From the IMG/VR virus record IMGVR_UViG_3300043399_000272, positions 124,001-188,000 of that record: a stretch of 64,000 bases of DNA. One strand, 5' to 3'. Below, piece after piece: positions 28,057 through 36,612 of the stretch. Within the stretch, counting starts at the first letter, position 1. The number at the start of each line of letters is the position of its first letter. The notes beneath the pieces were generated by a model that made no database searches, had not been told where the DNA came from, and saw only the letters and a list, made by a program, of their open reading frames with translations. A program made the position numbers and the translations under genes.

Positions 28057-28077
28057 CCAAAACTGCATAAATACTTT

Positions 28078-28644
28078 ATGCGAATCAAAGACTTGACAGA
28101 ATCCAGTGGCTATAGCCTTAGGGGCAGTTTTACTAGTGACTTAGTGACTAGTAAAGTTTGGTTATTAGATGAACTATCCAAGATATCAGATAGTTTTAGC
28201 ACTATATATGTGTTAGGTTCTTGGTATGGTAACACCGCCATTCTGTTAGAACTACTTAATAATATCGACTACGACACCCTAATCAATGTTGAATCAAACA
28301 AGAAATTTTTAAGTGGTAGCAAAAAACTATTGGATAATTTAGGGGCAACCAACATACAATATATGTTAAAGGATGCCAATACCCTAGATTATCGTCAGTT
28401 GGGCAATGACGGTGTAGTTATTAATACTAGCCTTACGGACATGCAGGGTACAGATTGGTTTGATAATATACCACCTGGTACATTAGTTGTAATGCAAGCA
28501 AGAGATAATGACCCGGGAGAGAAATTTTCTAGCCCAAAAGATATTGTCAGAAAATTTCCAGTTCGTGTGTTATATCAGGGGTCAAAGAATCTAGAAGATC
28601 CTGAGGCTAAATATAATAGATTTATGGTAATTGGAATCAAATAA
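28078..28644 (+). CDS. Class I SAM-dependent methyltransferase-like protein with capsid-targeting-like N-terminus
   Basis: IYVLGSWYG, INVE, VINTS, RFMVIG; N-terminus MRIKDLTES. Confidence 0.5.
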   Translation: MRIKDLTESSGYSLRGSFTSDLVTSKVWLLDELSKISDSFSTIYVLGSWYGNTAILLELLNNIDYDTLINVESNKKFLSGSKKLLDNLGATNIQYMLKDANTLDYRQLGNDGVVINTSLTDMQGTDWFDNIPPGTLVVMQARDNDPGEKFSSPKDIVRKFPVRVLYQGSKNLEDPEAKYNRFMVIGIK

Positions 28645-29528
28645 TGAAATCAAGCGAATTTATAACTGAAAATATAATTCAAGAAATAGGACGTCTAAGT
28701 AAAAGCGGCTTTGAAGGCGGCAAAGAATACCTAGACAGCTACAGTAGAGAAAAGTCTGTTCAGCCATTGCCCGGGGGTAGCGGCCTGCTGTATTCCATAA
28801 CCACCGTCAGTGGCGGCGATTTTATCATCAAGCTATGGGACAAGGACAACAAAGATCCGTTTGAGCCTACACCTATAGATGCCGAGCGCCCGTCCTTTTA
28901 TACCAGACGAGAGTGGGAACAACGCATAGAGCGTATCAAACAACGGGATGTTGACCGCAAGCGAGTATATGATAGGTCGCCTGGTAAATTGATAGGTCAA
29001 CTCACAGTAGACGATGTCGGCGGTAGTTTCCCACTGCCCGGTGCTGTACAAGTGGGCACCATCACTGTGGACGAAGATTATCGCGGCATGGGCTTGGCCA
29101 AAGCACTGTATGGCATTGTGTTGACTATCATGCGTCGACCTTTGCTAGCTGGTTCTAGCCAAACACCCGGTGGTCGTAAAAACTGGTTAAGCCTAAGTCA
29201 AATTCCCGGCGTGGAAATGAAGGGTTATTTAAAAATAGATGACTATGACCTAGAGACCCGCGATACTTCTGATGTAAGTAACGCTCGTGACAAGCGTTGG
29301 GCAGCTAATCAGAACAAACACGCGGAACAAAGAATAGATACTATCATGGGTGAACTAGGTGGACAATATATAGGCAAAGCCTCTGACCGACATTACTTTG
29401 CCTTTGACGTAAAACCTAGCACCACTAAACAAGAATTACAAGCGTATGTAGACACAAACCTAAGCAAAGTCTACGGTAGTTATAATTCAGACACTGGTCT
29501 ATATGCAGTTTGGACAGGCATAAATTGA
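28644..29528 (+). CDS. GNAT acetyltransferase-domain protein
   Basis: ITVDEDYRGMGLAKALY acetyl-CoA motif; QTPGG..W; N-terminus MKSSEFITE. Confidence 0.65.
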   Translation: MKSSEFITENIIQEIGRLSKSGFEGGKEYLDSYSREKSVQPLPGGSGLLYSITTVSGGDFIIKLWDKDNKDPFEPTPIDAERPSFYTRREWEQRIERIKQRDVDRKRVYDRSPGKLIGQLTVDDVGGSFPLPGAVQVGTITVDEDYRGMGLAKALYGIVLTIMRRPLLAGSSQTPGGRKNWLSLSQIPGVEMKGYLKIDDYDLETRDTSDVSNARDKRWAANQNKHAEQRIDTIMGELGGQYIGKASDRHYFAFDVKPSTTKQELQAYVDTNLSKVYGSYNSDTGLYAVWTGIN

Positions 29529-29541
29529 CCGGAGTAAAATA

Positions 29542-29625
29542 ATGTATGACCCAGATGACAACATGATACACTTTGCTGTGGGAATGGTAATCTGTGCTCT
29601 TGTTTTTGCATTAGTTTTAATGTAA
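29542..29625 (+). CDS. 27-aa membrane peptide
   Basis: GGAG SD; MYDPDDNMIHFAVGMVICALVFALVLM. Confidence 0.4.
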   Translation: MYDPDDNMIHFAVGMVICALVFALVLM

Positions 29626-29635
29626 AATAAATAAA

Positions 29636-29675
29636 AGTTATTGCTGTATGAAGCAAAGAGAAAAGTGTTCTGGAC
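29636..29675 (+). repeat. 40-bp direct repeat, copy 1 (truncated copy of the tmRNA acceptor piece)
   Basis: agttattgctgtatgaagcaaagagaaaagtgttctggac is identical to 30159-30198. Confidence 0.95.
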
Positions 29676-29716
29676 GCAAGGCGCTTAACAGTTCTTCTAC
29701 CACGCATAAATACTAG

Positions 29717-30130
29717 ATGCGTATTTCGGAAATTATCACAGAAGAAATAAATCCAGATATCCTCAATCCACATTTCCGTCACGAACAAAAGATTGGGGAT
29801 TACACCTATACTGCAACAACCAGCACCAACTATGGTCTGGAGCTAGTTGTCCAAGCGTTTGATGGTAAAAAGCAAATTGGAAAATGTGACTTTGAGATAA
29901 TTGCTGACGAAAAACCACCTCGGTTGGTCAGCAACGACACCTGGGTGGACGGCCGATACCAAGAGCAAGGTGTTGCTACCACAATGTATGCCTATGCCAA
30001 GATGTTGGGCAACGACATCGTTCCGCACGAAATACAATCGGATGCTGGCAATAGAATGTGGCGTTCTTGGCATCAAGCCAAACAATCAAAGCATATCATG
30101 CCTCGTGGGTATGATCCCTTTAAGAGTTGA
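29717..30130 (+). CDS. GNAT acetyltransferase-like protein
   Basis: TWVDGRYQEQGVATTMY, QSDAG..MW; N-terminus MRISEIITEE. Confidence 0.6.
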   Translation: MRISEIITEEINPDILNPHFRHEQKIGDYTYTATTSTNYGLELVVQAFDGKKQIGKCDFEIIADEKPPRLVSNDTWVDGRYQEQGVATTMYAYAKMLGNDIVPHEIQSDAGNRMWRSWHQAKQSKHIMPRGYDPFKS

Positions 30131-30155
30131 CAACACTCAAAAATAAATATACAAT
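30127..30155 (+). promoter_or_regulatory. sigma70 promoter of the tmRNA
   Basis: TTGACA-17 nt-TACAAT, with TAAATA inside the spacer. Confidence 0.85.
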
Positions 30156-30160
30156 GTGAG

Positions 30161-30476
30161 TTATTGCTGTATGAAGCAAAGAGAAAAGTGTTCTGGACCC
30201 GGGTTCGACTCCCGGCATCTCCACCATAAGCACACTAGTTGGGACAAAACGGTTAGATGTTTCCTCGCAAGACGAACTCTAAGCGCCCATCTAGTTAGTG
30301 TGTTTATGATGGGGATGACTTTGGTTTTCGACAGGGCAAAGAGTAACAGAGTGGACAGCACATCAGCAACGATGTAAAAAGAAGAAAATCTATAACTGCA
30401 AACGCAGCCAATGATGAGGTATTTGCCCTAGCGGCATAATCTCTGGGGGAACTATCCCTTATAACCCAAAATAGTA
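30161..30476 (+). ncRNA. ssrA: Circularly permuted (two-piece) tmRNA
   Basis: The acceptor piece comes first: T-arm CCGGG-TTCGACT-CCCGG and CATCTCC-A-CCA ending at 30226. An intervening segment spans 30227-30310. The coding piece starts GGGGATG at 30311 and pairs with CATCTCC including G3.U70. Tag ORF 30398-30439 reads ANAANDEVFALAA*. Confidence 0.93.
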
Positions 30477-30499
30477 ATAGGGACTCAGTCCCTATTTTT
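30476..30499 (+). terminator. Intrinsic terminator after the tmRNA
   Basis: AATAGGGAC-TCA-GTCCCTATT followed by a T run. Confidence 0.75.
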
Positions 30500-31118
30500 C
30501 TGGATATTGCCAAGTCCAAGACCCGTCCTCTCTATATAATCTCGTTCTGCCCTTAACCTTAGTAGATAATTTAGCGGCACCTTTTCTAGCATTTTCGGCA
30601 GCCTGAGGATTTGAAAGCCCTTTATTCCAACTACTTACTCTTGGATTTTTAATTACAAGTCTCTTGCCAATATTATTTCTAGCAGTATTTCTTGCGGCAC
30701 AAGATTGACTGCAAAAAGGCTTTTCTCGTAACGGATGATGACAAAATTCTAACTTACTAAAAATCTTTGAACACTCTAAACATAAATATTGCCTACTTTC
30801 TTTTGGTTTAGTTTTTGTTCTTTTATTTTGAACAGAAAGTAATTTTGAATGTTCTAACCTTGCTCTTTCGTAATATCTGTTGGTATAGTTCTTTTTTCTA
30901 CCCATTAGATTTACAGCATGCCATTGGGTTCCTCCGTAGATTTTTGCCAAAAGAATGTGTGCTACATAATGTTCTCTGGCTGTTAAATTAACAAGATTAT
31001 CCGGGTCACCAGTCCCGCCCATAGATTTAGGAATAATATGATGGGCTTCTTTGTATCCCTCTAACAATCTTTCTTTTGCTCTTTCTATTAACAAATTATA
31101 GTGTTTGGTGTAGTTCAT
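30492..31118 (-). CDS. HNH homing endonuclease
   Basis: EAHHIIPKSMGG...NLVNLTAREHYVAHILL; C-terminal Zn finger (CLEC..FCSQSC) and NUMOD-like WNKGL. Confidence 0.9.
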   Translation of the reverse strand: MNYTKHYNLLIERAKERLLEGYKEAHHIIPKSMGGTGDPDNLVNLTAREHYVAHILLAKIYGGTQWHAVNLMGRKKNYTNRYYERARLEHSKLLSVQNKRTKTKPKESRQYLCLECSKIFSKLEFCHHPLREKPFCSQSCAARNTARNNIGKRLVIKNPRVSSWNKGLSNPQAAENARKGAAKLSTKVKGRTRLYREDGSWTWQYPEK

Positions 31119-31127
31119 AACTTTATT

Positions 31128-31211
31128 TATGCTTTAGCAGCCTGATAACGGCAGCTTGGGGTAAGACATACCTCGCAACAGAACCTCAGAAAGGGCACTA
31201 GTTGCCCTTTT
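31128..31211 (+). pseudogene. Displaced second 3' end of a tmRNA coding piece (…YALAA**) with its own terminator
   Basis: tat gct tta gca gcc tga taa, then a GGGGT..ACCTC stem and an AAAGGGCA/TGCCCTTT-T terminator (31190-31211), in the same order as 30422-30499. Confidence 0.65.
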
Positions 31212-31249
31212 CTTTTGTAAACAATATGTTATGCATATATACTTGCATC

Positions 31250-31558
31250 ATGAGCAATGAGCAAGCAAAATTTCTAAACTCACGCCGCCGTCATAAGACC
31301 GACGTTGCAATCGCAAGACAAGTCAGAATTGCAAAACAACACAATTTAGGCTTCAACGACAAGCCCATCAAAGAACCCCACAGATTAGCAAAACACCACA
31401 CAATGGATTGTGGTAATCCCAAATGCTTCTTGTGTGGTAATCCACGAAAATCTCATAAAGATAGATTGACTGCACAAGAGAAAAGATTGTTCCAAGATAC
31501 GGAACAAAAAAGAGACCGTCATAGCAACGGTCTAGAAAATTCTGATGGCTCAGAATAA
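31250..31558 (+). CDS. Hypothetical basic protein with C-x4-C-x2-C motif
   Basis: HHTMDCGNPKCFLCGNPR; start revised to ATG 31250. Confidence 0.65.
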   Translation: MSNEQAKFLNSRRRHKTDVAIARQVRIAKQHNLGFNDKPIKEPHRLAKHHTMDCGNPKCFLCGNPRKSHKDRLTAQEKRLFQDTEQKRDRHSNGLENSDGSE

Positions 31559-31590
31559 CATACTAAATAAATCTTTAAGAGGAAAACAAT

Positions 31591-32043
31591 ATGAAGAAAA
31601 TCGCAATCGCATCTATTATCGCTTTGGCTGCTACAGCAGCATCTGCCTTAGAAGTAGGTACATCAGTAACACGTGATTACTCAGGTGAACCTGACCGCAA
31701 CGGTGGTGGTGTTAGTCTAACACAGCGTTATGGTGCTGTCGGCGTCACTGCTGGTTTTGACCGCTTTACTAAGGGTTCAAACGACCAGGATCGTTATAGT
31801 GTTGTAGCTGGATACGACATGGCTAAAGTCGGTCGATTCACCGTGACTCCTAAATTGGGTGTAGCTTATTTGAACAACCAAGTTGGTCAAGACGGTTATG
31901 CTATGACTGCTGGTGTTGGTATTTCTACTCCTATCACTAAGCAAGTTAGTCTAGGTCTAGACCTAGCTAGTCAACGTGGTCAAGACCGTGTTAAGTCTAG
32001 TGATGGTAATACTGTCGCAGTTGGTCTAAGCTATAAGTTCTGA
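31591..32043 (+). CDS. Outer-membrane beta-barrel protein (8-stranded, OmpA/OmpX/Lom-like)
   Basis: Signal peptide MKKIAIASIIALAATAASA, alternating amphipathic strands, C-terminal VGLSYKF BAM signal. Confidence 0.8.
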   Translation: MKKIAIASIIALAATAASALEVGTSVTRDYSGEPDRNGGGVSLTQRYGAVGVTAGFDRFTKGSNDQDRYSVVAGYDMAKVGRFTVTPKLGVAYLNNQVGQDGYAMTAGVGISTPITKQVSLGLDLASQRGQDRVKSSDGNTVAVGLSYKF

Positions 32044-32060
32044 TATTGAACTTCTCACAC

Positions 32061-32083
32061 AAAGGCTACTTCGGTAGCCTTTT
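32061..32083 (+). terminator. Intrinsic terminator
   Basis: AAAGGCTAC-TTCG-GTAGCCTTTT. Confidence 0.9.
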
Positions 32084-32103
32084 ATTTTGGCATATTTTTC
32101 AGG

Positions 32104-32121
32104 TTGTCACAGTATTGTCAC
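32104..32121 (+). promoter_or_regulatory. Pho box
   Basis: TTGTCAC-AGTA-TTGTCAC, an 11-bp-period direct repeat just upstream of pstS. Confidence 0.8.
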
Positions 32122-32167
32122 AATTCTACAAGTAAATAATTATGTGTAACACAAAGGAGAAACACAC

Positions 32168-33172
32168 ATGAAAAAACTTATTATAGGTTTATTTGCTTTC
32201 TTAATGTCAGTTGCTTATGCTGCTGATATTACAGGTGCCGGCGCTACTTTCCCTTATCCCATTTACTCTAAGTGGGCAGAAGTCTACAAGAAAGAAACAG
32301 GTGTTGGGCTTAACTATCAAAGCATCGGTAGCTCAGGTGGTATTCGACAGATTAATGCCAAAACTGTAACATTCGGTGCAAGTGATGCACCAGTAAAAAG
32401 TGAAGATTTAGATAAGAATGGACAAGTTCAGTTTCCTGCAATTATCGGAGGAACCGTTCCTGTAATTAATTTGGATGGGTTCAAACCAGGAGAACTTAAA
32501 ATTACTGGTACTGTGTTAGCAGAAATCTATTTAGGTGAGATAACAAAATGGAATGACTCTAAACTGCAAGAATTGAATCCAGGTAAGAATTTACCTAACA
32601 TAAACATAACTGTTGTACACAGAGCAGATGGTAGTGGAACAACATTTAACTTTACTGATTATCTTAATGAAGTTAGTACTAAGTGGAAAGAACAAGTAGG
32701 AAAAGGCGCTGCCGTGAAGTGGCCCGCTTCCAGTAGTGTAGGGGGCAAGGGAAACGAGGGTGTTGCTGCCAATGTCAACCGTGTCAAGGGTGCAATAGGA
32801 TATGTTGAGTATGCTTATGTTAAGAAAAACAACATGAACTTCTTACAGTTACAAAACAAAAGCGGTAGATATGTAAGTCCTGATGATTTAACATTTGCAG
32901 CCGCTGCTAGTAAAGCAGATTGGTTCAGCGTACCGGGAATGGGAATCAGTATCGTAAACCAAGTAGGAAATGATGTATGGCCTATTTCTACAGCTAGTTT
33001 TATTATCATGTATAAAAATCCAACTGACAAAAAAGCAAGTCAAGACGTTTTGAAATTTTTTGACTGGGCATTTAAGAACGGAAAGAAAGACGCAATTGAT
33101 TTAGATTACGTCCCGCTTCCTGACTCATTAACCAAACAAATTCGTGAAAGAGTTTGGAGTCAAATCAAATAA
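32168..33172 (+). CDS. pstS: Phosphate ABC transporter substrate-binding protein
   Basis: ITGAGATFPYP, YQSIGSSGG, FGASDAP, RADGSGTT, GAIGYVE; signal peptide. Confidence 0.97.
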   Translation: MKKLIIGLFAFLMSVAYAADITGAGATFPYPIYSKWAEVYKKETGVGLNYQSIGSSGGIRQINAKTVTFGASDAPVKSEDLDKNGQVQFPAIIGGTVPVINLDGFKPGELKITGTVLAEIYLGEITKWNDSKLQELNPGKNLPNINITVVHRADGSGTTFNFTDYLNEVSTKWKEQVGKGAAVKWPASSSVGGKGNEGVAANVNRVKGAIGYVEYAYVKKNNMNFLQLQNKSGRYVSPDDLTFAAAASKADWFSVPGMGISIVNQVGNDVWPISTASFIIMYKNPTDKKASQDVLKFFDWAFKNGKKDAIDLDYVPLPDSLTKQIRERVWSQIK

Positions 33173-33176
33173 TCGA

Positions 33177-33422
33177 CTACACTGATTGAGTAGTACCGGA
33201 ACTCGTAACCGGTTGTTTATTTAAAACAAGAGGCTCATTTTGAGCCTCTATTTCCATTCCCCATTTGAATTTTAACCATATTCGTTCGTGTATGTAATGA
33301 ACAAATGTCATTGCTATATTGATTAGTATAGCTCCTTCTAACCCAGTAAAAACGGCTGTAACAGCCGTCGCAGTAACTCTCCAACTCGCCGCTCGGGCAA
33401 CTGTCCTTGTGTGTGATTCCAT
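33177..33422 (-). CDS. DUF2061-like small membrane protein
   Basis: MESHTRTVARAASWR...HYIHERIW...W; GGAGA SD. Confidence 0.7.
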   Translation of the reverse strand: MESHTRTVARAASWRVTATAVTAVFTGLEGAILINIAMTFVHYIHERIWLKFKWGMEIEAQNEPLVLNKQPVTSSGTTQSV

Positions 33423-33549
33423 AATTTCTCCCAAATCATTTTACTTATTATGGGTAAATTAACTATAATAGTCGCATACTTAGCACTCTGTAGACCACTA
33501 AGTAAATGTATAGAGTGCTCTAGTAAAGTGCTCTACGAAAGTATAGGAA

Positions 33550-33921
33550 ATGTCAAATTTAGGTTGTTTTACTTGTTTAAATTGTGGGAAAGTCAATCCG
33601 ATAAAGGGTCACAGTTATACAAACAAATACTGCAATAACAGTTGTCAGCAAGAACATCAAAGACGCCACAAAGCGTTTGAAAATGTTCAGCGTTGGAAAG
33701 AAAGCAAAGAGCCACAAGCCTGGGCAAAAATTCCCGATTGGATTAGGAAGTATTTGATTGATAACAGAGGGCACAAGTGTGAATCATGTAGCAATGAAAC
33801 ACACAATGGGAAAGAGATTCCACTAGATGTAACTTATCGTGATGGTGATAGTTACAATACAAAGGAAGACAACTTAATGTTGATATGCCCCAATTGTAGG
33901 GCACAGAGAAAATTTCATTAA
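33550..33921 (+). CDS. Zn-finger/HNH-like endonuclease with degenerate active site
   Basis: CLNC..YCNNSC; CESC...LDVTYRDGD..N...NL..ICPNC (canonical His residues replaced). Confidence 0.6.
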   Translation: MSNLGCFTCLNCGKVNPIKGHSYTNKYCNNSCQQEHQRRHKAFENVQRWKESKEPQAWAKIPDWIRKYLIDNRGHKCESCSNETHNGKEIPLDVTYRDGDSYNTKEDNLMLICPNCRAQRKFH

Positions 33922-33939
33922 CACACAAAGGAAACACAA

Positions 33940-34485
33940 ATGAAAACAATCGGCGATAAAATTACAAGTTTTGCAGTTACTGGCGTTAAGCCCGGCGCAC
34001 TTACTCCAGAGGGCGCATTCGAAACTATTACTGACAAAAGTTTCGAAGGAAAATGGAAAGTTATTGTTTACTATCCTAAGGACTTCACTTTCGTATGTCC
34101 TACTGAGATTGTTGCTTATGACAAGCTCAATGGTGACTTTAGTGACCGTGACGCAGTTCTATTGATCGGTAGTACTGACAATGAATTCTGTAAACTAGCA
34201 TGGCGTAATGCACACGCGGATCTAAAAGAGACAAACTCTTGGTCATTCGCTGATGTTGCACGTGACGAAAACAGTCTAGCACAACAACTAGGTATCTTCT
34301 ATGGTCCAGCAGGTGCGGCACTTCGTGCTACATTCATCGTTGACCCTGATAACGTTATCCAGCACGTTACAGTAAACAACTTGGACGTTGGTCGTAACCC
34401 AGATGAAACATTGCGTATTCTTGACGCATTGCAAACCGGTGAACTATGCCCATGCTCACGTCCAATCGGTGGTGAGACACTATAA
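33940..34485 (+). CDS. ahpC: 2-Cys peroxiredoxin
   Basis: YPKDFTFVCPTE, RATFIVDP, VGRN..E.LR..DALQ..ELCPC. Confidence 0.96.
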   Translation: MKTIGDKITSFAVTGVKPGALTPEGAFETITDKSFEGKWKVIVYYPKDFTFVCPTEIVAYDKLNGDFSDRDAVLLIGSTDNEFCKLAWRNAHADLKETNSWSFADVARDENSLAQQLGIFYGPAGAALRATFIVDPDNVIQHVTVNNLDVGRNPDETLRILDALQTGELCPCSRPIGGETL

Positions 34486-36204: not shown

Positions 36205-36612
36205 ATGGCAAGTCTAGCTGAATATTTTGAGAAGAACCGTCCTCAACCTTATTTTGAGTTCGGTACACGTGTGTTCGGTAAATGGAATAAGATTCCTTTT
36301 GTTGGCACAGTATACGGGGATGGTATGATCAATGAAGAAGACGGCCCACGCCTAACAATTCATCTAGACTTGCCCATTAAAGTTGATAACACAGTTAAAA
36401 CAATTATAATTGATACGTATGACAAATTTAAGGGTCTAGTAGAATTATCAGACCCGGATGCGCCCGTAGCTGATCGGAAAGCAAGAGCCTCTAAAACTCA
36501 AGGTAGTGGGTTCGACTCCCACCGAGCGCACCAAACAAAACCTAAAGCTAAGGAGAAATCTAAGTCAACTTCTCTATTAGAGAATTTGAAAAAGCTCAGG
36601 GAAAAGAAATAA
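36205..36612 (+). CDS. Hypothetical protein whose C-terminal part overlaps a tRNA gene
   Basis: Globular N-terminus (GTRVFGKWNKIPFVG..IHLDLP); the tail DAPVADRK...HRAHQ is encoded by the tRNA sequence. Confidence 0.65.
   Translation: MASLAEYFEKNRPQPYFEFGTRVFGKWNKIPFVGTVYGDGMINEEDGPRLTIHLDLPIKVDNTVKTIIIDTYDKFKGLVELSDPDAPVADRKARASKTQGSGFDSHRAHQTKPKAKEKSKSTSLLENLKKLREKK
36460..36533 (+). tRNA. tRNA with CUA anticodon (amber suppressor type), imperfect stems, nested in a CDS
   Basis: Acceptor GCGCCCG/CGAGCGC (6/7 pairs) plus A-CCA; T8A9; D-stem GCT/AGC with GG; anticodon loop CT-CTA-AA (CTA at 36491-36493) on AGAGC/ACTCA (3/5 pairs); perfect T-arm GTGGG-TTCGACT-CCCAC. Confidence 0.8.

Follow-up and report, generated by a model that had tools for sequence, protein, structure and literature searches.

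The Mob and Seg families of T4-like phages are free-standing homing endonucleases that spread by intronless homing. The nuclease gene lies outside introns, beside or within conserved genes, and the enzyme cuts the allele of a co-infecting relative that lacks the nuclease gene, whereupon repair copies the gene plus its flanking markers (PMC2330249, PMC2988022, PMC2790892; reviewed in PMC10448857). In the mitochondria of arbuscular mycorrhizal fungi, mobile endonuclease ORFs (mORFs) carry a substitute gene terminus (PMC3630166). Allomyces atp6 is another case of an endonuclease ORF that has a substitute gene terminus. Group I introns, some with LAGLIDADG genes, occupy the T loop of tmRNA (PMC11915505), and permuted two-piece tmRNA is known in large aquatic phages such as the Methylophilales phage Melnitz (PMC9004378). 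We found no description in the searchable literature of free-standing endonucleases that replace the ends of phage tmRNA genes.

The sequence analyzed here (the window) is a stretch of 64,000 nt, positions 124,001-188,000 of the 260-kb IMG/VR virus record IMGVR_UViG_3300043399_000272. It comes from a large freshwater phage and contains one tmRNA body and two non-identical tmRNA 3′ ends with an HNH endonuclease gene between them. The original prediction, made from the sequence alone, was that the endonuclease had arrived together with a replacement tmRNA 3′ segment and had displaced the original end. This claim is supported by a breakpoint within the gene, by linkage of one end to the endonuclease and by decay of the other, and an end swap is likely to be the correct explanation as a whole, with the cleavage site, the resistance to cleavage and the repair route remaining inferences.

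A permuted tmRNA gene and a second tmRNA 3′ end

The region contains a single tmRNA gene, an intact permuted two-piece gene of the beta type on the plus strand (30134-30498). The permuted call of ARAGORN spans 30134-30530, with the tag ANAANDEVFALAA and its stop codon encoded by a tag ORF at 30398-30439. Two Rfam models matched at full length, the beta-proteobacterial model RF01850 with 99 bits (cut-off, 84) and the general permuted model RF04321 with 119.8 bits (cut-off, 47). The criteria for a two-piece tmRNA are satisfied in that the T arm and CCA acceptor end lie upstream of the coding piece, the resume codon is GCA and the tag ends in ALAA. A strong sigma-70-like promoter is present on the plus strand at 30127-30155 (TTGACA, 17 nt, TACAAT; 11 of 12 matches). 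This promoter also falls within the 5′ leader of the Rfam beta_tmRNA model, and its -35 box overlaps the stop codon of ORF137.

The resident part of the gene, assigned by Rfam and ARAGORN (30159-30390, plus strand), comprises the acceptor piece to CCA (about 30159-30226), the intervening loop (30227-30310) and the start of the coding piece. The remainder (30391-30498, plus strand), which we consider to have been swapped in for the reasons given in the next section, contains the tag ORF with its TAA stop codon, a G run, a pseudoknot hairpin having a CCCTTATAACCCAAA loop (about 30444-30475) and a terminator hairpin (30476-30496). The same arrangement is present, identical, in a second viral contig (L002/L123), and thus the layout is not an assembly accident. 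The gene has probably remained complete with a foreign 3′ end, although its transcription, two-piece processing and trans-translation activity are inferred only.

Facing this gene on the minus strand (30492-31118) is a gene encoding a protein of 208 residues, which Pfam, PHROG and DNA similarity identify as a free-standing HNH homing endonuclease. The Pfam HNH score is just above threshold (21.9 bits; cut-off, 21.4), whereas residues 1-122, the nuclease domain, match PHROG 655 (“homing endonuclease”) with an E value of 2e-43. The HNH catalytic motif is visible (HHIIPK...N...H), and the gene is similar at the DNA level to genes annotated as homing endonucleases in T4-like Klebsiella and Escherichia phages. 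The last ~45 residues form a conserved module (...SWNKG.PNP..NARKGAAKLS..GR.RLYREDGSWTWQYP), and the TAG stop codon of the gene sits in the 3′ arm of the tmRNA terminator hairpin stem. The gene is located within neither an intron nor an intein; it lies on the strand opposite to the tmRNA, and a search of 29500-31400 detected no intron family even at E values up to 10. It is the only ORF within the insert, and no tyrosine or serine recombinase was found there.

Just past the HNH gene start, the plus strand reads TAT GCT TTA GCA GCC TGA TAA from 31128. This had been taken to be a second tag terminus, YALAA followed by two stop codons, with a GGGG-containing stem and a terminator beyond it, and all of these elements were found in place. 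The piece that we interpret as the displaced original 3′ end (31131-31211, plus strand) was delimited by an nhmmer profile, BLAST, alignment to the intact genes of loci L209, L269 and L073, and its predicted fold. It consists of ALAA codons (31131-31142), the stop codons TGA TAA (31143-31148), a hairpin GGGGUA/UACCUC (31158-31174), a conserved CGCAACAGAA and a terminator-like hairpin plus T run (31189-31211). The profile, built from 101 distinct phage two-piece tmRNAs, matched the main gene over profile positions 3-345 (182.8 bits) and matched 31126-31238 over positions 263-361, the last tag codons to the terminator (E 1.5e-5). As the tag ORF occupies profile positions 250-282, the downstream piece takes in the tag from about its fifth codon onward and extends to the terminator. 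BLAST of 31119-31215 returned 121 loci, the best of which was L209 (86% over 85 nt, E 9e-19), and the fold of the piece is that of the intact ends in L073 and L209. The likeness of the downstream piece to a tmRNA end is therefore far above chance. It has no gene body of its own, and we take it to be a remnant that is, in all likelihood, nonfunctional as a tmRNA.

The YALAA reading held only in part. Clear tmRNA homology starts only at 31131 (GCT TTA GCA GCC), and 31119-31130, which includes the TAT codon, lacks clear homology to intact tags; for this reason a candidate uninterrupted ancestral tag, ANDNFIYALAA (30404 joined to 31117), was dropped. The origin of this junction segment is uncertain. 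On the minus strand it contains CATAAATA, 5 nt and ATG upstream of HNH, and the motif CATAAATA-N4-5-ATG also precedes ORF188 (28078) and ORF137 (29717). Probably the segment belongs to the cassette and serves the endonuclease as an expression signal or leader, in which case TAT may be a piece of that leader. Alternatively, it could be left over from earlier tag codons.

Intact counterparts of the remnant were found in other genomes. When the viral collection was scanned for the core of permuted tmRNAs, 120 loci were found, and one of them (L073) has an intact endonuclease-free gene with GGGGTAAGACATACCTCGCAACAGAA in place after the tag, a string identical to that in the downstream piece of the window. 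A scan of the metagenome collection for the GGGGTAAGACATACCTCGCAACAGAA string (Y at one position) gave at least 120 contigs, nearly all of which are from freshwater. Wherever the contig allows a judgment, almost every one proved to contain a complete tmRNA gene that has the string at its usual place after the tag. The terminator of the remnant is also found in L209, L265 and L284, and its double stop codon and spacer in L269. Endonuclease-free tmRNA genes had been predicted to carry an end of the 31128-31211 type in place, and this was seen (L073, L209, L269, among at least 120 metagenome contigs). The outcome that would have refuted the prediction, HNH-less relatives having an end of the 30422-30499 type and no similarity to 31128-31211, was not seen.

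No endonuclease-free allele of this very phage was found by exact remnant-string searches of the viral and metagenome collections or by a synteny search with the upstream GNAT-like protein. The exact remnant string was absent from the metagenome collection and occurred in the viral collection only in the identical contig L002. The GNAT-like protein (28644-29528) has a homologue in 63 viral loci, but of these the identical contig alone has a tmRNA at a distance of 6 kb or less, and hence the synteny route gave no such allele. A 25-mer of the displaced type was not found among 185,579 bacterial and archaeal species genomes, which suggests that ends of the remnant type are carried by phages and not by their hosts.

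Origin of the two 3′ ends

The two ends were searched separately and have different relatives. BLAST of the attached end (30405-30500) found only six loci, the endonuclease-free L039, L091 and L109 plus the cassette-bearing L187, L195 and L197. In a sliding comparison the tmRNA body was closest to L047, L025, L017 and L004, with 36 of 36 bases identical at 30330-30365. Just short of the resume codon (30398), in the interval of about 30385-30400, L109, L039 and L091 become the best matches, and from 30450 L187 takes over. Identity between the window and the L047 group is 81% and 76-78% for the two segments of the body, but only 45% for the tag and 35% for the 3′ end. The 3′ ends of this group give local scores of 17-20 to the remnant vs 7 to the attached end. 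The anatomy of the locus, the homology of both ends and the switch of relatives are direct observations.

The attached end is linked to the endonuclease. The 3′ half of the pseudoknot, the terminator and the first ~60 nt of the coding region for the endonuclease C terminus form one conserved block in the window, L187, L195, L197, L284 and L196, whereas the tags and bodies of these block-sharing loci differ. Because tags differ among cassette-bearing loci, the left edge of the transferred tract is either variable or diverged. The remnants of cassette loci have differing terminators, each typical of a different endonuclease-free allele, and it is the remnants that degrade whereas the attached ends stay complete. 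The L187 remnant has a 22-nt deletion that includes the G run, in L197 all that is left of the endonuclease gene is its final ~100 nt, joined to a partial remnant, and in L088 only a stub of the remnant is left. L196 has two stacked (nested) insertions and two remnants. Every stage of decay of the remnant and the endonuclease is covered by the relatives L187, L197, L321, L342 and L088. Given the breakpoint, the linkage, the diversity of the remnants and their decay, the attached end is likely to be the newcomer and the remnant the displaced original.

The converse reading is that the attached end is native and that the HNH gene landed downstream of an intact tmRNA gene, bringing the remnant as cargo from a previous host. 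Two observations favor it. The first 29 nt beyond the HNH start are near-identical in the window and L187 (27 of 29 positions), as if they moved with the endonuclease, whereas the HNH genes are only 69% identical, and ends of the attached type are present in the endonuclease-free L039 and L091. Against this reading, the closest relatives of the gene change from one group of loci to another exactly at the tag, and the last endonuclease codons are built into the attached terminator within a block that is conserved across loci. Moreover, the distal parts of the remnants vary by locus and match different endonuclease-free alleles, and the remnants are what decays. We consider the native-end reading unlikely. 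Attached-type ends in L039, L091 and L109 could be those of donor-type or formerly invaded lineages, where they would be expected, and so understood they do not contradict the swap model.

A further proposal, which is compatible with the swap, is that the downstream copy is retained for a role as a promoter or leader for the endonuclease, as a terminator or as the right homology arm for homing. The conserved proximal 29 nt, the CATAAATA-N4-5-ATG motif shared with two other gene starts and the intact hairpin and terminator of the window remnant speak for such a role. As the 29 nt are more conserved than the HNH gene itself, this part of the “remnant” is under selection, probably as a leader, and is not a pure fossil. 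In contrast, remnants are partly or almost wholly deleted in L187, L197, L196 and L088, and hence most of the remnant length is dispensable. A retained role remains possible.

On the swap model, the events at this locus would have been as follows. A cassette of ~740 bp (about 30391-31130) would have entered a two-piece tmRNA gene inside its tag-coding region, carrying a foreign tag ORF, pseudoknot and terminator on the plus strand and, on the minus strand, the HNH gene preceded by a short leader. The endonuclease of a co-infecting donor phage is proposed to have cut the recipient tmRNA gene between the resume codon and the ALAA-stop codons. The tract of donor DNA then copied by repair would have begun at a crossover within the shared tmRNA body, immediately 5′ to the resume codon, and would have taken in the donor tag end, the terminator and the endonuclease gene. 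Rejoining just before the ALAA codons of the recipient may have been illegitimate the first time or may have used homology with a remnant already present in the donor. The outcome would be a gene that is complete with a foreign end, with the end of the recipient (31131-31211) left as a downstream fossil and ~20 nt of the original tag lost. The altered codons of the new tag end would shield the invaded gene from recutting. Note that the best body relatives are merely ~72-81% identical and that the family is highly mosaic with frequent recombination; the donor and the recipient are therefore inferred from a mosaic family.

Recurrence of the layout and the putative target site

The same layout is found in other viruses. 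L187 has a full-length HNH homologue (62% identical) in the same position and layout, with synteny extending through the AhpC gene, and the C-terminal module is common to the GIY-YIG-type endonucleases of L195, L196 and L284 (metagenome set). Searching the viral collection with an alignment of the module gave 34 loci, 28 of which have a permuted tmRNA on the opposite strand with its 3′ end at the ORF stop. The six loci lacking a tmRNA were the weakest, partial matches. The module is joined to an HNH domain in the window, L187, L319 and L324/L328, to a GIY-YIG domain in others (in L334, for example, a NUMOD3 motif accompanies a Pfam GIY-YIG match of 22.8 bits) and to another GIY-YIG-like form in L322, L323 and L339, whereas the gene is degraded in L197, L321 and L342. 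The recurrent association of the module with tmRNA genes is thus established. Loci that have the HNH nuclease domain alone (L188-L194) have no tmRNA nearby. This difference is the reason for proposing that the module is the DNA-binding part that recognizes tmRNA genes.

A displaced end is present in at least 14 of the 28 tmRNA-adjacent loci (about 8 distinct arrangements after merging of identical contigs). Only hits that include tag codons were counted as remnants, because a class-1 hairpin without tag codons was also seen behind an unrelated ORF in L084 and L115. A motif count of second pseudoknot loops was rejected as a remnant detector owing to its many chance hits. A group I intron as the cause of the split profile hits in L239, L312 and L257 was also rejected, as Rfam found complete tmRNAs and no intron. 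Whatever the nuclease domain, the displaced ends start at profile positions 261-269, just before the ALAA codons. A different GIY-YIG-like gene lies on the same side in L046, L051 and L088, where the junction is just upstream of the resume codon. The tmRNA site is therefore polymorphic for the presence of the gene, with gene-free intact tmRNAs on the one hand and the 28 tmRNA-adjacent loci on the other, and has a mosaic breakpoint.

From the constancy of the junction, the insertion site can be assigned to the tag-coding region, where the cut is probably made as well. The original prediction had gone further in suggesting that the HNH enzyme may target the tag-coding region of tmRNA genes and that the replacement segment is resistant to cleavage, and both suggestions have only indirect support. 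For the target, this is the common starting position of the remnants of many independent loci. For resistance, it is the distribution of the GCAGCCTAA ending, found in none of 17 distinct cassette-linked tag ends vs 35 of 101 genes in a pattern-selected viral set and 8 of 11 remnants; the common tag ending TT[AGC]GCAGCCT[AG]A is likewise kept in 8 of 11 distinct remnants. The prediction that the second terminus has the same residue order as the attached end but different codons fits these counts. Avoidance of GCAGCCTAA in cassette-linked tags also fits target-site immunity, but the counts are uncorrected for shared ancestry. On balance we lean toward the view that the tag-coding region is the target and that the attached end resists cleavage, although the evidence is indirect and both cleavage and resistance are inferred in the absence of enzyme data. 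The last tag codons around GCAGCCTAA provide a concrete candidate for the recognition site.

A second remnant lies on the 5′ side of the gene. Positions 29636-29675 (plus strand) are a 40-nt perfect copy of the tmRNA gene start (30159-30198), recognized as a repeat and by a profile match (29635-29677, profile positions 10-52, E 1.4e-6). The copy is truncated at GGAC just before the T arm and is followed by ORF137 (29717-30130). Analogous 5′ remnants precede related ORFs in L083 and L239 and another HNH gene in L011, L044 and L239. The site of this second HNH family is at the T loop, and the fragment it displaces is the 5′ one.

The nearby 5′ duplication and the common orientation of the two 3′ ends could suggest that the 3′ end was duplicated in tandem, that the copies diverged and that an HNH gene was later inserted between them. 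This is very unlikely, as the ends differ in pseudoknot class, each has its own relatives elsewhere, and the same junction position recurs with unrelated nuclease domains. Integration of a genomic island or prophage by an integrase, with the two ends as attL and attR, would give the geometry known from bacterial tmRNA genes that contain islands, in which the gene is regenerated and a fragment of it displaced (PMC4383910). However, the insert is ~0.7 kb, contains only the HNH gene and lacks an integrase. The two ends are of different sequence classes with different BLAST relatives rather than near-identical att repeats, no repeat between them having been reported, and in other loci GIY-YIG nucleases occupy the same site. 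An integrase origin is thus also very unlikely.

A bolder reading of these data is that aquatic phages harbor a guild of modular homing endonucleases specialized on phage tmRNA genes, one module with HNH or GIY-YIG domains acting at the tag end and a second HNH family at the T loop, with repeated end replacement driving mosaic evolution of the tag, the pseudoknot and the promoter-proximal region. We put this forward as a hypothesis that is less likely than not to be correct. If it is true, the variety of phage tags and their deviant T loops would be footprints of an arms race between recognition and escape rather than adaptations of trans-translation. An extension, that the nuclease also cuts the tmRNA gene of the host during infection, is conceivable. 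Short of the guild reading, sequence differences among phage tmRNA tags need not reflect host adaptation, and in annotation stray tmRNA ends near phage tmRNA genes should be read as invasion fossils and not as extra genes.

Comparison with known mobile endonuclease systems

The closest case among T4-like phages is SegB, which lies in the T4 tRNA gene cluster (PMC2330249) and resembles the window in having a nuclease gene outside any intron, with intronless homing being inferred for the window. The window differs in that the target is a tmRNA gene and in that the outcome is not a clean intergenic insertion but a gene duplicated in part, one 3′ end being the replacement and the other the displaced original. 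Its family differs further in combining one putative DNA-binding module with either HNH or GIY-YIG at the same site, cleavage being inferred. At least 22 distinct loci thus form a natural series of one module with different nuclease domains and the same target, which should be useful for studies of endonuclease retargeting or rebuilding.

Tyrosine-integrase islands and prophages in bacterial tmRNA genes share with the window an element-borne 3′ replacement and an original fragment at the far end of the insert (PMC4383910), but in the window the 0.7-kb insert lacks an integrase, the two ends do not form near-identical repeats, and what has been invaded is a phage genome. The group I introns of tmRNA genes likewise make the tmRNA gene a target of endonuclease-driven mobile DNA. 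In contrast to these, no intron was detected in the window, the free-standing endonuclease is encoded on the strand opposite to the tmRNA, and it is the tag region that has been invaded. The paper on phage Melnitz reports neither endonuclease invasion nor gene-end remnants (PMC9004378), unlike the situation in the window.

The mitochondrial mORFs share the combination of an endonuclease gene and a foreign gene end, a functional hybrid gene and an original terminus that persists downstream as a remnant. They are found in protein-coding genes of organelles, whereas the gene invaded in the window is a phage gene for a structural RNA, in which a tag ORF, pseudoknot and terminator have been substituted. 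Intronless homing and terminus replacement are themselves already known; what is new here is their probable combination on a phage tmRNA gene. The phage tmRNA gene is thereby added, as a structural RNA gene, to the known targets of free-standing homing endonucleases, and an RNA gene, it seems, can be kept working by a substitute end that the element supplies, as some mitochondrial mobile ORFs do for protein genes.

Probable replacement at the tmRNA 5' end

The bases that open the two-piece tmRNA gene (30134-30498, + strand) are duplicated perfectly over 40 nt at 29636-29675, 523 nt 5' of the gene. This remnant ends at GGAC, ahead of the T arm. Next come a conserved leader and ORF137 (29717-30130), whose small product has a GNAT-like motif but no Pfam match; the ORF137 stop codon is overlapped by the real tmRNA promoter. 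Comparable 5' remnants precede related or different ORFs in two other contigs (L083:1-770, - strand, and L239:74-590). Given these three remnants, the window tmRNA gene seems to have had its 5' end, too, exchanged for that of an incoming cassette, which in this case lacks an endonuclease.

A second HNH family (168-183 aa, PHROG 655-like) was found at L011:2618-3225, L044:1824-2433, and L239:593-1174. In all three loci the HNH gene is directly preceded by a tmRNA 5' fragment broken off in the T loop (GGGTTCGACT), and a complete tmRNA gene lies further along, past the HNH gene. This layout is the mirror image of the 3' end replacement seen in the window and suggests that the second family targets the T loop. 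Apparent upstream tmRNA 5' fragments were also seen in L214, L235, L278, L312, and L257.

Several phage tmRNAs have T loops unlike the usual TTCGA (TGCGAAT, TGCAAAT, and GGCAGTG; L187:2880-2900, L195:2960-2985, L197:2890-2915, L083:190-215, and L284:2395-2420), and ARAGORN fails to call some of these. Such genes could be decaying, or they could be variants that escape a T-loop-targeting endonuclease.

Nested invasions and variant 3' ends

Nested invasions lie 3' of a single tmRNA gene in L196 (1484-2650), where a GIY-YIG-like gene is followed by a short tag-end remnant and then by a second HNH gene, an unrelated one of 113 aa (Pfam HNH E 3.6e-7). The stop of this last gene overlaps another displaced, complete tmRNA end. 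At L084:2404-2453 and L115:8839-8891, 3' of a conserved downstream ORF (MTPFEIRLEL...), the tmRNA 3' end contributes a repeat of its class-1 pseudoknot hairpin (loop CCTCGTAACAGAA) that lacks any tag codons. Rather than remnants, these copies may represent a terminator or processing element that has been put to use again. Some intact phage tmRNAs (L268:1115-1312 and L263) encode an unusually long tag (~28 residues, ending ...KASLAV) and have the displaced-type 3' end.

Downstream genes, an amber-type tRNA and a start-codon motif

Downstream of the tmRNA locus are auxiliary genes encoding a PstS-like phosphate-binding protein (32168-33172; PBP_like_2, E 2e-36) and an AhpC/TSA peroxiredoxin (33940-34485; E 3e-22), between which lies a cysteine-rich 123-aa ORF (33550-33921) lacking a Pfam match. 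In L187, which carries a 62% identical HNH, the AhpC gene is immediately 3' of the tmRNA remnant, and thus the phage of the window has an additional block at 31250-33900. At 36460-36533 there is a tRNA of the amber-suppressor type, with anticodon CTA (ARAGORN label tRNA-Pyl; Rfam 54.3 bits). In code 11 the surrounding ORFs read normally, and the window HNH gene itself terminates in TAG.

Three window ORFs are preceded by CATAAATA and then 4-5 nt before the ATG: ORF188 (28066-28080), ORF137 (29705-29719), and the HNH (31118-31131, - strand). The motif resembles the T4 late-promoter box TATAAATA, although it is unusually near the start codon.
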